Part shown: one piece after another, positions 4,389 through 20,180 of the stretch | Numbering within the stretch: position 1 is the first letter of the stretch | Layout: each line of letters begins with the position of its first letter | Sequence record: NC_074632.1 | DNA: 23,666 nt | Direction: 5' to 3' (one strand) | The notes under the pieces: model-generated | Seen by the model: only the letters and a program-made list of their open reading frames with translations | Databases searched by the model: none | Told to the model about the DNA's origin: nothing | Program-made: the position numbers and the translations under genes

Positions 4389-4414
4389 ACTACGTTCGGA
4401 GCTTCGCTCCTCAC
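4389..4414. repeat. Hairpin element copy 3
   Basis: ACTACGTTC-GGAGC-TTC-GCTCC-TCAC. Confidence 0.9.
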
Positions 4415-4426
4415 TCAATTTTCAAT

Positions 4427-4456
4427 ACAAATATTCCTTATATTATTTATATGTAT
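4427..4456. promoter_or_regulatory. 30-bp operator-like motif upstream of the ATPase gene
   Basis: ACAAATATTCCTTATATTATTTATATGTAT, about 25/30 to consensus. Confidence 0.55.
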
Positions 4457-4517
4457 ATTTTCATTCAATTTTACGTGAAAGAGAAGCTTAAAATATGTTG
4501 ACTCCAACGATTTACGT

Positions 4518-5828: not shown

Positions 5829-6457
5829 AAATGGTTTATGAGAATAAAATAAAAGAAAGCTTCAAGAAAATTTATCCAGAAGATACACTTTATCCGTCCG
5901 AAATTGGGCATTGCCTGCGAAAAACAATTTTGGCGAGAAGGATTGTCCATACAAAAAATCTTTCAAATGATTTCATGGATCTTGGCGTAATTATTCATGC
6001 TGACATTGAAAATTACCTAACGCAACAATTAGGTTGCGATGCAGAGAAAGCAATTGAATATCAAATAGAAGGTGTAAAAATATCTGCAAGAATAGATTTA
6101 CTTTGTCATGGCGACCTACTTGAATTGAAAACAGTTTCGCATTTTATTCGTCAACCTTATCAAAATCATATTGTTCAAGTATCTCTTTATTTACATATTT
6201 TATCACAGTTAGGATATAATGTTAATAATGTTTACATTATTTACGTAAATAGACAAAATTATGATGTACAAGAGTTTAAAATTCAAAAAGAACAACTAGA
6301 TGCTGGTTTAAAGCAAGCAATTAAATTTATAGAAGATTATAAGAAATACAAAAATGAGCAAAATATATTTAAAATTCCATTTGCGGATTTAGTTTTTTGC
6401 AAAACTTGCGAATTTAATAATATTTGCTATGGATCGATAACTAATTTTTTAAAATGA
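5825..6457 (+). CDS. Cas4-like (RecB-family, 4Fe-4S) nuclease (SIRV2 gp19-like)
   Basis: N-terminal YPSEIGHCLRK, RIDLL...LLELKT, QVSLY, C-terminal CKTCEFNNIC (1+3 Cys). Start is TTG 5825 or ATG 5831. Confidence 0.9.
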   Translation: MKMVYENKIKESFKKIYPEDTLYPSEIGHCLRKTILARRIVHTKNLSNDFMDLGVIIHADIENYLTQQLGCDAEKAIEYQIEGVKISARIDLLCHGDLLELKTVSHFIRQPYQNHIVQVSLYLHILSQLGYNVNNVYIIYVNRQNYDVQEFKIQKEQLDAGLKQAIKFIEDYKKYKNEQNIFKIPFADLVFCKTCEFNNICYGSITNFLK

Positions 6458-6549
6458 TTCGCCTTATCTGTGTTATTTTTATTGTATGACTCTCTGGTTC
6501 ACTCCGGGGGTTATATACTTTTAAATTATATATTATTAAGAATTATAAT

Positions 6550-6879
6550 ATGGAGAATAAATTCGCTGATTGGAATAAATATAGAAGGCAAGTTAATCAA
6601 GTTATTTTGGAATATTTCAACGAAACTGGTGTGCCGTTAGCGTTGAGATCTTTATATTTTTCATTTGGGCAAAAAATATTGTCAATTGTAAAAAGACAAA
6701 AAGATAAAAATATTATAGATAAATTAGTTGAGGCAAATATTTGCTATTTTTCAAAAGGTTTTGACGCAAATGAAAGAGTATTAAGAGATATTGTAAAAAT
6801 TATATTTTTAATGAAAATTGAGAATAAAAAACCAGATGAAGTTTTGAAAGAGATTTTTACGGATAAAGCTAACCACTAA
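6550..6879 (+). CDS. Probable truncated paralogue of the major capsid protein
   Basis: 16/59 ungapped identities to MCP residues 67-125 of this genome. Confidence 0.7.
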   Translation: MENKFADWNKYRRQVNQVILEYFNETGVPLALRSLYFSFGQKILSIVKRQKDKNIIDKLVEANICYFSKGFDANERVLRDIVKIIFLMKIENKKPDEVLKEIFTDKANH

Positions 6880-6980
6880 TATACCTTATATTAATAATAT
6901 GAATATTGTGTAATTTTGATGTTTTGTTGTAAACATGCATATACATAATATTAGGTATATGCAATTTTCGTATTCAATTT
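6875..6980 (+). promoter_or_regulatory. 106-bp late regulatory module upstream of MCP
   Basis: 30-mer 6875-6904, near-perfect palindrome GCATATACATAATATTAGGTATATGC 6937-6962, CGTATTCAATTT 6969-6980; colinear with 13211-13316. Confidence 0.75.
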
Positions 6981-7526: not shown

Positions 7527-7751
7527 ATGATTGAAGAATATTTAAGACAAAAGGGCTTTGAGCCCCATTATATTTCAATTTTGAAAGAATTTCTGATTGA
7601 AATAAAAGAAGCATTAGATGAGAACGTTAGTAATTACGATTTAGACGAAATTATAAATTCTATCATCGAATATTTTGCAATAACATATAAATTACAAAAA
7701 ACAGATCTTTACCAACTTGTGAACGATGCGATACAAGACGGTGTTGTATGA
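7527..7751 (+). CDS. Acidic 74-aa protein, possible second truncated MCP-fold paralogue
   Basis: 15/68 ungapped identities to MCP 59-126 with conserved hydrophobic pattern. Confidence 0.6.
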   Translation: MIEEYLRQKGFEPHYISILKEFLIEIKEALDENVSNYDLDEIINSIIEYFAITYKLQKTDLYQLVNDAIQDGVV

Positions 7752-10639: not shown

Positions 10640-11153
10640 CTTTTTTCACCTCGTTTTTCGTTTTTTTGTCTTTTTCGTTTACTTCGTTCGGCACTACGTG
10701 CCTCACATTTAAATATTTTACAAAAACTGGCGTATTTGTTCTAGGCGTGTCTCCGACATATTCAAATCCTGAATTTTTATATAATGCATTTGAATGATTT
10801 GGAAAACCTAAAGTCCACAGCACTTCAATTTCATATGATTTCAGTAAATCAGATAATTTTTCAAGAAATTCTACAAGGTAATCGCCTGGGGCAGTTTTCG
10901 TAACCCTTCTAATAAAATACGATCTGTCAATTGGAATTTTGAATTTTTCTGCAACAAATCTGAATGGAATTGAATCGTTGATCCACGCAATTGCAACGAT
11001 GTAATTATCGCATTGATATGTAAAATATTTCTGGATTTTTGACGCTCCACCGCCTTGCGTTATGCCTTGAGCATGATATTTTGCAATTAGCAATCGTGAT
11101 AATTCAATATCTTTCTTATCCTGAAGTTCAACTATTTTGCATTCTTCCGCCAT
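10632..11153 (-). CDS. GNAT-family acetyltransferase
   Basis: FIRRVTK...YLVEFLEKL...EVLWTLG...NHSNALYKNSGFEYVG matches GNAT motifs A and B. Confidence 0.7.
   Translation of the reverse strand: MAEECKIVELQDKKDIELSRLLIAKYHAQGITQGGGASKIQKYFTYQCDNYIVAIAWINDSIPFRFVAEKFKIPIDRSYFIRRVTKTAPGDYLVEFLEKLSDLLKSYEIEVLWTLGFPNHSNALYKNSGFEYVGDTPRTNTPVFVKYLNVRHVVPNEVNEKDKKTKNEVKKDE
10681..10706. repeat. Hairpin element copy 6 (inside the GNAT 3-prime end)
   Basis: ACTTCGTTC-GGCAC-TAC-GTGCC-TCAC. Confidence 0.9.
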
Positions 11154-11194
11154 TTTCAGTATAATTATTCATAATATAACTTATAAGAATATAC

Positions 11195-11392
11195 CTAATG
11201 GTGAAAGCAGTGTGCCCAAAGATCTACGGAAACGCCAGTTGAAACAATAAGGACAATTATTGCAAATATTTTCTCTCCAGTGCTAACATTAGAAAAAATC
11301 AAAATTATAGATAAAACAATAAGAAGTAGCAAACCATACAAATCATGCATTTTTCCATGAGAAAAATAATAAAACATATCGCAGTTAGACAT
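11195..11392 (-). CDS. Small two-TM membrane protein
   Basis: LYGLLLLIVLSIILIFS and KIFAIIVLIVSTGVSV hydrophobic segments; ATG 11392 overlaps the hjc stop (alternative ATG 11350). Confidence 0.6.
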   Translation of the reverse strand: MSNCDMFYYFSHGKMHDLYGLLLLIVLSIILIFSNVSTGEKIFAIIVLIVSTGVSVDLWAHCFHH

Positions 11393-13156: not shown

Positions 13157-13210
13157 TCTTCATCTATGTATTATTTCTCTTATTGCCACTTTTATTGCTC
13201 AATTTTCAAC

Positions 13211-13316
13211 ACTCATATTCCTTATATTAATAATATGAATGTTGCCGATACTTTTACGTGGTTTAGAAACATTATTATACCTAATATTAGGTATAATGAT
13301 ATTGCGTATTGAATTT
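13211..13316 (+). promoter_or_regulatory. 106-bp regulatory module between divergent genes
   Basis: 30-mer 13211-13240, perfect 24-bp palindrome ATTATACCTAATATTAGGTATAAT 13274-13297, CGTATTGAATTT 13305-13316. Confidence 0.75.
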
Positions 13317-15517: not shown

Positions 15518-18500
15518 ATGAGTAGTATCATTTCAGGTCTAGAGGCAGTAGAGACATTCTTTTCAGATGAGCTCACAGCATTAGAGAATTTTACAAATTT
15601 TCTAGCATCTGATTTTGTATCGTTTTTCCAAACTATTTCTGGCGATTTTCAACATGCAATATCTTTCCTAGCAACTGCAATTAGCGATATTCCTACCTTC
15701 ATTCAGCAAGGCGTCTCCTACTTTGTTCAAGTATTGCAAAATGTATTTTCTAATGTTTCGTCTGCAATATCTGGATTTGTGCAGTATGTATCTAGTGCAT
15801 TTCAAGGATTTTTCCAAGATGCATCTGGTTTAATGCAAGGATTTTTAGACTCCATTTACGGATTTTTTGCAAATATTGCCAACGGTCTTGCAGGATTTGT
15901 AGCAGGAGCATTTGAAGATCTTATACAAGCGTTTGGATCAGTAGGAAAATATGTAGCATCTGCTGTCCCGCAAATCATTAACTCAGTTGCGCCGGTTTTC
16001 GGTCCCTACTTGCTAGCTAGAATTTTGCCAAATGCGGTTGACAGATTAGGAGAAATCTTGCCAGGAATTGAAATATCTTTAGCCCCAGTCGGGTTAGGTG
16101 GAAAATTCAATATTGAATTTGGTGAAATAGCAAAAATGATTGGTGAGCCAATTGCCGATTTGATGAGGGAAATCACTGACGAAATGATGAGCGACCTTAA
16201 GGAGTTTTTGAAAGAACCATTTATTTCAAATTTCAAAATCACAATAAGAGAAATTTTCAACAGTATTGGACTTGGCGACCTTCCATTTGCAGACCCATCA
16301 TATCGTGAGATCACATCATGGATTGGCGCAAGATCATTCTCAGAAATGAAAGATCATCTAAGAGAAACAGTTCTCCTCACCGGATATCCGGCATGGTTTA
16401 CCAATGCATTCCTTGAGCCTCCTGCTGACGATTATATACCTGGAAATCCATTGTTTAAACCAGTTGCAATTCGTGATGTGATTACGGCATCTGAATATGG
16501 ACTATTGCCTGTATCGGCTGTAGAGCAATATGCAGAAAATAATTTGATAACGAAAAAAACTGCAAAATTAATGTATGAAAACCAGAATTTGAAATTGTTC
16601 CAGCGTGTAGTAGAACAAGGTATCAGAGCATTTGTTGTTGAGCCTGACAAAGCTTATGACTTAATGTTGTCTGGCACTTCCTTATCAGGCAAAGATTTAT
16701 TTACAAAATATTTCGATATTGAGTATCAATTTGCGACACAGAGATTTGCAAAACAGGTACTTAGGGCGCTTTTGTCAAGGGCTCTTTCCAATTTTGGTAG
16801 ACCGTATGTAGATATAAAGTATTTGACTAAAACCACAGATGAAATATATAAACAACTAAAATTGCCAAAAGAAGTTGAAAAATTGTTTGAAGAAATGATC
16901 ACAGAATCTCAACTTGTTCAATACAACCAATTAATTTTCACATTTTTAAGATCGAAAGTTGAAAAAGGAATATTTGATCAAAAAGATGTCGAAAAATTGC
17001 TAAAAGATTACAATTTCAACGTTAATGAATCGCTTTATATTTTGCAAAATTATGTAGATCTTCTAATCACAGAGACAGAAATCCAATTAATCCAACAGAA
17101 ATTGCAAAATTTCTTTATTTCCGATAAAGATGCAACGCACGAATTGAAAAAATTGAAAATAGATGATAATTATGCAAATCTTTTGGTTGACAGATATTAT
17201 AATTTACCGTTGGCAAAAGAGAAAGCGAATGTGTATATCTCTTTGTTAAAAAAAGGATATTACAACAGTCACGAAGCAAAAACTGTATTTAAAGCACTTG
17301 GTTATTCGGCAAGTGTAATTGATGAATTATTGGATTTATATTCGCAAGAAATTGAGACAGAACTGCAGATAAAAACGATAGAACAAAAAGCCCAATTATT
17401 CCTTTTGGACGAACATGAAATCAGCACTGAACTGAAAGCGTTGCATGTATCAGATGCTCTTATCCAGGAAATTATTACAGAATATTTGCAAATTCCGTTT
17501 TTGAAGCAACAAGTTGCAATTTACGAATCCCTGATCAAAAAGGGATATTATAACAGTCATGAGGCAAAAAGACTGTTTTCGTCATTGGGTTATAAACAGA
17601 CGGCAGTTGAACAACTTATACCATTGTACTCACAAGAAATTGAAATTGAAACAACAATTTCAAAATATAAGGCGTTGTTGCAACATTTCCTAATCGACGA
17701 AAAAACTACTGAACAAGAATTGAAAAAATTGCATGTGTCTGACGCATTAATTGATGAATTATTGACAGAATATTATCAAGTTCCATTAGATGAAAAAATA
17801 TTCAATATTTATCTTACACTTTTAGAAAAAGGGTACATTACGGTAGATGCGATTAAAAAAATTTTGGGCGCAAAAAATGTTAATGCAACCGCTCTAAAAG
17901 AAATTTCAGATGCTTACAACTACGAAATCGAAATTGAAAATTCGATTAAATATATACAATCATTACTAAAGGCATTGATCATTGACGAAAAGACCGCAGA
18001 ACAGGAATTGAAAAAATTGAATATTTCTGATACATTAACAAAAGCGATAATTGCAGAATACACGCCGGTTTTAGTAAATGTAAAATCTGTTGCGCAAACA
18101 ATTATAGAAGGCGCAATATACAATGTCCAAAAAGTTCCAATTTCTGCATCTCATGTTGCAGGTGATTTGAAAAAATTGAACATTCCTGATAATCAAATAA
18201 ATGCGCTCGTAGACGAAATTGAATCGCAAGTTGCTTTGGAGATCTGGAGAAAATATTTGCCGTCATTGTCCGATATAAAAACCGCTTTGACATATGGTTA
18301 TCCAATTGACAAATTATTGCAATTATCTCTCATACCTGCAGAATTATACAACATACACGCAGATCTGACACAATATGAAATTGTCGCAAAAGAAGTGCAA
18401 AACTTAAAGACCACATATGCAAAATTGTTAACGTATAATGTAGTAAATTCACAATTAGAAACAATGTTGAGACAATATGGAATTAACGATCAATTGTTAC

Positions 18501-20084: not shown

Positions 20085-20180
20085 ATTCATATTATTAATA
20101 TTAGGTATATGAGTACTGGATATTTTTCGCTCAGAATCAAAAAATTTGTCTGCAACATTCCTATATATTATATAAGGAAT
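20085..20180. promoter_or_regulatory. Paired operator-like motifs upstream of the methyltransferase-GT operon
   Basis: ATTCATATTATTAATATTAGGTATATGAGT 20085-20114 and near-palindrome ATTCCTATATATTATATAAGGAAT 20157-20180. Confidence 0.65.

Follow-up and report, generated by a model that had tools for sequence, protein, structure and literature searches.

The gp13 locus of ARV3

The 23,666 nucleotides of sequence record NC_074632.1 analyzed here (the window) make up the whole genome of Acidianus rod-shaped virus 3 (ARV3; MN876842 / NC_074632; Rudiviridae, Hoswirudivirus), with 100% identity to it over the part compared. The virus is one whose host is Acidianus brierleyi and which originates from Pozzuoli, Italy. 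The gene under study, gp13, lies between a gene for a Cas4-like nuclease and gp14, the gene for the major capsid protein (MCP), and is a functional gene that was born of a duplication of the rudivirus MCP gene; its identity as an MCP-derived gene is held with high confidence. Coordinates of the features discussed are collected in Table 1. An earlier note on this DNA, made from the letters alone, had placed an open reading frame (ORF) for a 109-residue product directly upstream of the MCP gene, and the GenBank entry, in which ARV3_gp13 is followed by gp14, agrees with this. The same note had called the protein hidden, which was wrong because the homology was already public: GenBank gives the product of ARV3_gp13, and likewise the orthologues of MRV1 and SSRV1, the name 'putative coat protein', and the Pfam family PF12193 is stored for the MRV1 protein. 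A read-through fusion of gp13 with the MCP, for which the two genes share a common frame, was rejected on account of several in-frame stops in the spacer.

Table 1. Positions of gp13, its parts, its neighbors and the regulatory features around it (window coordinates unless another record is named; aa, amino acids; nt, nucleotides; pI, isoelectric point)
Feature	Position	Strand	Source
Cas4-like nuclease gene, ARV3_gp12	5831..6457	+	GenBank annotation
T5 run, 19 nt past the Cas4 stop codon	6476..6480	+	Sequence reading
23-nt element upstream of the putative gp13 promoter, kept in 4/4 hoswirudiviruses	6483..6505	+	Alignment of upstream regions
TATA-like box TTTTAAAT, centered about 27 nt before the gp13 ATG, conserved in four viruses	6519..6526	+	
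gp13 (ORF13-109), armless MCP paralogue, 109 aa, pI 9.4	6550..6879	+	GenBank CDS ARV3_gp13 / QJF12326.1
Predicted four-helix bundle, gp13 residues 4-89 (4-26, 30-49, 53-71, 75-89), corresponding to MCP residues about 41-128	6559..6816	+	
Predicted fifth, C-terminal helix, gp13 residues 95-107, no MCP counterpart	6832..6870	+	AlphaFold2 model, family alignment
Operator-like repeats in the gp13-MCP spacer, MCP regulatory region	6862..6974	+	Repeat families D2, D3, D8, D11, D16
gp14, MCP, 134 aa	7018..7422	+	GenBank 'putative major capsid protein'; Pfam PF12193, 249 bits over 1-134
gp15 (ORF15-74), 74 aa, pI 4.2, directly after the MCP gene	7527..7751	+	
ARV1 ORF124 (Q50I53), annotated hypothetical	L006 2498-2872 = ARV1 AJ875026 6315-6689		tblastn, BFVD model

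Sequence kinship of gp13 and the MCP

The similarity between gp13 and the MCP was examined by direct alignment. An ungapped match of gp13 residues 27-85 to MCP residues 67-125, with 16 identities in 59 positions, had been reported previously; the recount was exact, and the segment scores 62 with BLOSUM62. When gp13 was shuffled 2000 times, the best 59-residue diagonal had a mean score of -2.6 (standard deviation 7.5) and a maximum of 39, with none at 62. BLASTP of gp13 against the MCP returned an E value of 7e-9 (24/82 identities), and Pfam assigned gp13 to PF12193 (Sulf_coat_C) with 71.7 bits and E 8.4e-20, well clear of the curated gathering cut-off of 25.2 bits, gp13 residues 13-87 aligning to profile positions 53-127 of 134. 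PHROG 7510, a coat family, was the sole PHROG match. In a phmmer search against PDB sequences the SIRV2 (3j9x, 3f2e) and SSRV1 (6wq0) capsid proteins ranked top, with weak scores, and comparison of a profile of the gp13 family with one of eleven rudivirus MCPs gave a probability of 96.3% and an E value of 1.5e-9 over 73 columns. Together, these results confirm that the similarity is not due to chance. Judged by its sequence, gp13 derives from the rudiviral MCP (PF12193, E 8e-20) and not from the SFV1_VP4 family, for which E is 0.029.

The missing arm and a predicted fifth helix

An AlphaFold2 model of gp13 was computed from an alignment of paralogues only (gp13, its MRV1 orthologue and the metagenomic protein P0004), with no MCP rows. 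It reached a predicted local distance difference test score (pLDDT) of 91.6 and a predicted template modeling score (pTM) of 0.85, and contains five helices (Table 1). Foldseek matched the model to PDB entries of SIRV2 (3j9x, probability 0.99), SSRV1 (6wq0, 0.98) and AFV1 (3fbl, 0.96; 3fbz, 0.91), and to 3f2e (0.85), the E values being weak, as is usual with small helical bundles. The predicted fold thus matches the SIRV2/SSRV1 MCP bundle, which is the outcome on which the earlier note had staked its structural test.

In the structural alignments residues 1-88/91 of the gp13 model correspond to MCP residues 41-128/134, and gp13 therefore matches the bundle domain of the MCP without roughly 40 N-terminal residues. 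That gp13 lacks the N-terminal arm, as previously proposed, is borne out both by these alignments, which begin at about MCP residue 41, and by the DNA: inspection of the reading frame found no start codon farther upstream, and the gap between Cas4 and gp13, 92 bp in ARV3, is too short to contain what would be left of about 40 codons for an arm. The N-terminal tail of the SIRV2 capsid protein is a long kinked helix around A-form DNA, with the DNA lying in the cleft of the dimer (PMC5517147; PMC7189273). By its model gp13 thus shares the bundle of four C-terminal helices of the SIRV2-type MCP fold, while the DNA-wrapping arm that defines a functional capsid subunit of this type is absent.

At the other end of the protein, a conserved P-D-[DE] turn precedes the predicted helix 5, within which E101 and K106 are invariant in the family alignment. 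Among BFVD models, that of the SSRV1 orthologue matched the gp13 model with a template modeling (TM) score of 0.96, and that of ARV1 ORF124 (Q50I53) with E 5.7e-5 and a TM score of 0.86 over 110 columns, an alignment long enough that helix 5 is included. Because it is kept in ARV1 ORF124 and in the metagenomic member, helix 5 is a hallmark of the gp13 family.

Selection and regulation

The ratio of non-synonymous to synonymous substitution rates (dN/dS), determined by the Nei-Gojobori method, was 0.05-0.10 for gp13 among MRV1, ARV2 and SSRV1; comparison of ARV3 with each of the three gave 0.26-0.30, and the values for MCP and Cas4 were 0.06-0.13. The frame is intact in all six members in which it could be followed (four isolates, ARV1 and one metagenomic contig), and for the short pieces of diverged variants found among hot-spring metagenome contigs, no indels were listed within 6550-6879. 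One such contig (run X3) departs from ARV3 at window position 6552, right past the gp13 start codon, and encodes an N-terminus that reads ..DKFEEWNEY; this divergent gp13-like N-terminus implies that further alleles of the fast-evolving gene exist in nature. The GC content of the family, overall and at third codon positions (GC3), follows that of each host genome, the GC-richer ARV1 included, and a recent horizontal acquisition of gp13 was discarded since GC3 matches that of the neighboring genes in each genome.

The 70 nt upstream of the gp13 ATG are conserved in all four hoswirudiviruses. Three features could be recognized between Cas4 and gp13 (Table 1). The T5 run is a possible archaeal terminator that would divide an ATPase-Cas4 unit from gp13. 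The 23-nt element, for which a search allowing as many as 3 mismatches gave one match in the window and none in 100 shuffles, is a candidate gene-specific regulatory site. The TATA-like box, read with the TATA-to-start spacing rule for Sulfolobales promoters, suggests that gp13 has a promoter of its own and a leaderless or near-leaderless mRNA. On the other side of gp13, the operator-like repeats of the gp13-MCP spacer recur near 4414, 11148, 13198 and 20085. These AT-rich repeats (4414-4475, 6862-6974, 11148-11200, 13198-13316 and 20085-20124) precede the ATPase gene, the MCP gene and other genes, and two copies are located in the MCP spacer.

These data bear on a further explanation, namely that gp13 is a decaying, functionless remnant of a duplication or that its likeness to the MCP is fortuitous. 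A remnant might well look like this gene, which is truncated and small, evolves fast and is missing from most rudiviruses. It is, however, under purifying selection, its frame is unbroken in all six of the independent genomes or contigs, its promoter is conserved, and its predicted fold is confident and compact, with a conserved added helix; a chance similarity would not lie so far past the shuffles or score as it does in Pfam. Such an explanation is most improbable and is already effectively refuted by selection, conservation, fold and shuffles.

Distribution and origin of the family

Orthologues of 107-108 residues occupy the same place in MRV1 (gp09), ARV2 (ALG96882) and SSRV1 (gp10), with 59-61% identity to gp13. 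An exhaustive phmmer search of gp13 against 1.84 billion representative sequences returned two relatives only, the MRV1 protein and P0004, a metagenomic protein of 121 residues (E 1e-6, 26% identity). From P0004, tblastn led in turn to ARV1 ORF124 (E 1e-9), which scores 17.6 bits on PF12193, below the cut-off. ARV1 ORF124 and P0004 are thereby linked to the gp13 family in this analysis, and W8, G27, K42, Y66, L78, K89, E101 and K106 are invariant in 6/6 members, which also have the P-D-[DE] turn in common.

To delimit the family, a hidden Markov model (HMM) built from it was scanned across the complete SMRV1 and SBRV1 genomes and 40 rudivirus loci of IMG/VR, the latter taken with flanks of up to 10 kb. 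Matches were confined to ARV1, ARV2, ARV3, MRV1, SSRV1 and contig L005; elsewhere among these loci and genomes the HMM scored the MCP alone (E 1e-8 to 1e-10). Other searches were in keeping with this narrow range. The query, the MRV1 protein and P0004 were all that a word-indexed protein search returned, whether gp13 alone or a three-sequence profile was used; an IMG/VR scan gave no match with gp13 peptides and ARV2 only with the family alignment; and a scan of JGI metagenomes for the family gave no match. SIRV2 gp20 (ORF84a), which occupies the slot after Cas4, was considered as a distant member and rejected, as it had neither a Pfam nor a family-HMM match, and in the SIRV2 loci L007 and L035 the family HMM matched no ORF apart from the MCP. 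The Italian rudiviruses form a monophyletic clade in which ARV1 branches off as sister to the others, and segment inversions occur in ARV1 (Baquero et al. preprint). The range of the gp13 family is that clade, ARV1 together with Hoswirudivirus.

Contig L005 (positions 1-1944; a Logan contig of ERR14373517) is a rudivirus fragment with an ARV1-like gene order. It is mosaic, its Cas4 being 47% and the C-terminal part of its ORF314-like protein 84% identical to those of ARV3, which suggests recombination among Italian-type rudiviruses.

A synteny table of 49 loci was compiled. In every virus that has one (ARV3, MRV1, ARV2, SSRV1, ARV1 and L005), the gp13-family gene stands directly after the Cas4-like gene and on the same strand; it adjoins the MCP gene only in the four hoswirudiviruses ARV3, MRV1, ARV2 and SSRV1. 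This arrangement would most likely go back to a single event in the ancestor of the Italian clade, in which a tandem copy arose between Cas4 and MCP; in ARV1-type genomes the MCP block would later have been moved off by an inversion. In a maximum-likelihood tree all paralogues fall into a single clade (support 100/100), and the point at which they join the MCPs is a polytomy with very long paralogue branches; for this reason the timing of the duplication rests on the parsimony of the distribution and not on the tree.

Possible roles of gp13

The earlier note had suggested that the protein could initiate or terminate assembly, cap the ends or act as a chaperone. The role that we tentatively favor is that of an accessory protein: by engaging the MCP, or the lattice that it forms, gp13 would influence assembly, either as a chaperone or as a polymer-end factor. 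The bundle domain forms the outer body of the capsid subunit, and the contacts among subunits and within the lattice, on the outer side of the nucleoprotein helix, would be made by it. Because gp13 keeps this domain, it would most likely dock on MCP, either free or already part of the lattice, and would be unable to clamp DNA. This reading has indirect support only: the role of the N-terminal tail in SIRV2, the adjacency of gp13 and the MCP gene in four viruses, and residues invariant in both families, among them those equivalent to MCP G67, K82, Y106 and L118. The protein might then keep the MCP soluble, or fill the sites at which the DNA-bound polymer must stop, that is, the virion ends. Such a protein would be accessory and not core, since most rudiviruses build the same virion without gp13. 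Prediction of an MCP-gp13 complex gave an ipSAE of 0.00 in both runs, values which, obtained without controls, count neither way on binding.

Several observations weigh against an assembly role. The SSRV1 helical reconstruction (6wq0) is listed with a single structural protein, although copies located at the ends are neither supported nor excluded by it. ARV1 ORF124 lies about 3 kb from the MCP gene, which is on the other strand, and the L005 gene is likewise not beside the MCP. In the tree the paralogue branches are 10-40 times longer than the MCP branches, and gp13 is 21-26% identical to ARV1 ORF124 and P0004 (21% for the ARV1-ARV3 pair), as compared with 87% for the ARV1 and ARV3 MCPs. Such fast evolution is unexpected for the partner of an almost invariant MCP surface: MCP gp14 is 78-87% identical to most other rudivirus MCPs, and 64% to that of the Mexican SMRV1, by tblastn. 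Net charge is not conserved within the family either, the pI ranging from that of gp13 (Table 1) to 5.2 in P0004. Finally, a repeat search of the window found no operator-like repeats in the upstream region of gp13 itself; co-regulation with the MCP is accordingly not indicated, and with repeats before the MCP and other genes and none before gp13, the latter is apparently a transcription unit of its own, differently regulated.

Fast evolution, non-conserved charge, separate regulation and lost adjacency in ARV1 all feed the principal alternative, in which gp13 has been neofunctionalized and is non-structural, the MCP bundle having been co-opted to provide a small, soluble scaffold for some task that is regulatory or host-facing, with no role in the particle. 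Examples would be the binding of a host factor, or service as a decoy for a host component that recognizes the capsid protein. Other proteins of these viruses have diverged less across genera than gp13 has (ATPase, 63% identity; ORF314, 51%; Cas4, 46%), dN/dS is raised on the ARV3 branch, the gene is restricted to one clade, as are variable rudivirus genes, and its promoter region is unlike that of the MCP. The family-specific W8 and fifth helix, both absent from the MCP, would also fit such a task, as would the host switching noted for the Italian clade (Baquero et al. preprint). Nevertheless, Pfam and PHROGs return the coat family alone and no known anti-defense or regulatory family, gp13 accessions are absent from the supplementary files of a regulatory-motif screen for archaeal anti-defense genes, and gp13 sits in a conserved core block and not at the genome ends, where rudiviral anti-defense genes cluster (PMC11065993). 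On balance we consider a purely non-structural role only slightly less likely than the assembly role.

The position of gp13 raises another option, that it works with the cassette of SSB, annealing ATPase and Cas4 nuclease as an adaptor which passes genome ends, once replicated or processed, on to the capsid protein and so couples maturation to encapsidation. The place right after the Cas4-like gene, on the same strand, is the only synteny kept across the whole family, which speaks for this. Yet 68-356 bp separate Cas4 from gp13, with a T-run and promoter-like signals of gp13's own in between, the linkage could just as well be left over from the tandem duplication, the MCP block having afterwards been inverted in ARV1, and other rudiviruses run the same cassette without gp13. 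We therefore regard an adaptor function as quite unlikely.

A candidate third copy and other features of the window

The gene that follows the MCP is gp15. An alignment of the gp15 and gp13 families gave an E value of 1.8e-5 in a register consistent with that of the gp13-MCP alignment, and the SSRV1 orthologue of gp15 (gp12 of that virus) was among the BFVD matches of the gp13 model (probability 0.84). gp15 is thus probably a third, still shorter protein of the MCP fold, and was found in the four hoswirudiviruses only. ARV1 ORF74b and an ORF of 74/82 residues in L005 were tried as gp15 homologues and set aside, their alignments being gappy at 16-20% identity with no match to the ORF74 HMM.

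If gp15 belongs here, the locus would hold a tandem trio of genes of the MCP fold: that of the complete MCP, gp14, flanked by two armless copies, gp13 with a basic product and gp15 with an acidic and shorter one. The armless proteins might serve as dedicated regulators or end-pieces of the A-DNA nucleoprotein helix; for example, they would cap the MCP polymer, or nucleate it, where the genome ends, perhaps paired with each other in imitation of an arm-free MCP dimer. We think it unlikely that the trio works in this way; were it true, it would be a living case of capsid-gene duplication and subfunctionalization in a family supposed to use one homodimeric MCP.

Two further repeat features were noted in the window. 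Internal direct repeats with spacings of 288 and 576 nt (D5, D6 and D14) at 17102-18205 point to a repeated protein module in a large ORF, and a 27-nt GC-rich hairpin-like element (D10) is present in four dispersed copies (906-932, 2853-2879, 4389-4415 and 10681-10707).

Significance and comparison with known systems

The homology of gp13 to the MCP is not new, being already recorded in GenBank and Pfam. What is added here is the armless architecture with its fifth helix, the evidence of selection, the extension to ORF124 and a metagenomic protein, the clade-restricted distribution and the candidate third copy. Full-text literature searches found no paper discussing a coat-protein paralogue of the gp13 type, and the describing preprint mentions neither a truncated coat protein nor any duplication or paralogue. 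The searchable literature yielded no proteomic data, and no RNA-seq run was found to cover the region.

Among filamentous archaeal virions, that of the rudiviruses is the textbook example of construction from one homodimeric capsid protein. Since gp13 is a conserved extra gene of the MCP fold, and gp15 probably a second, capsid-gene duplication has also taken place inside Rudiviridae. If the armless copies touch the MCP, they would provide a handle on how assembly of the A-DNA rod starts and stops and on the composition of the virion ends; if they do not, a capsid fold has been exapted to another task. SSRV1 infects the tractable Saccharolobus solfataricus, in which the role is directly testable.

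Within the gp13 family, ARV1 ORF124 and P0004 share with gp13 an architecture of five helices without the arm, as well as the place behind Cas4, and differ in a C-terminus that is 12-15 residues longer and in an MCP gene that is not adjacent. The rudivirus MCP (SIRV2 P134 / SSRV1 MCP; 3J9X, 6WQ0, 3F2E; PF12193) has residues 1 to about 40, the A-DNA-wrapping helix, which gp13 is without; gp13 in turn has the extra C-terminal helix, about 22% identity to the MCP, a one-clade range and a different regulatory region. Among themselves, most rudivirus MCPs reach about 80-87% identity (64% for SMRV1). The earlier note had contrasted the homodimeric rudivirus MCP with the two paralogous MCPs of lipothrixviruses and tristromaviruses, in accordance with the literature (PMC7189273). 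In those two families of enveloped relatives (Lipothrixviridae, with AFV1 ORF132/ORF140, 3FBL and 3FBZ; Tristromaviridae, with 5W7G and PFV2), MCP1 and MCP2 have each retained a helical arm at the N-terminus, and as a heterodimer both of them wrap DNA (PMC7189273, PMC5517147). The armless gp13 is therefore no equivalent half of a DNA-wrapping dimer, and the outcome of duplication inside Rudiviridae differs accordingly: a DNA-wrapping arm was lost, where in the other families a second DNA-binding subunit was gained.
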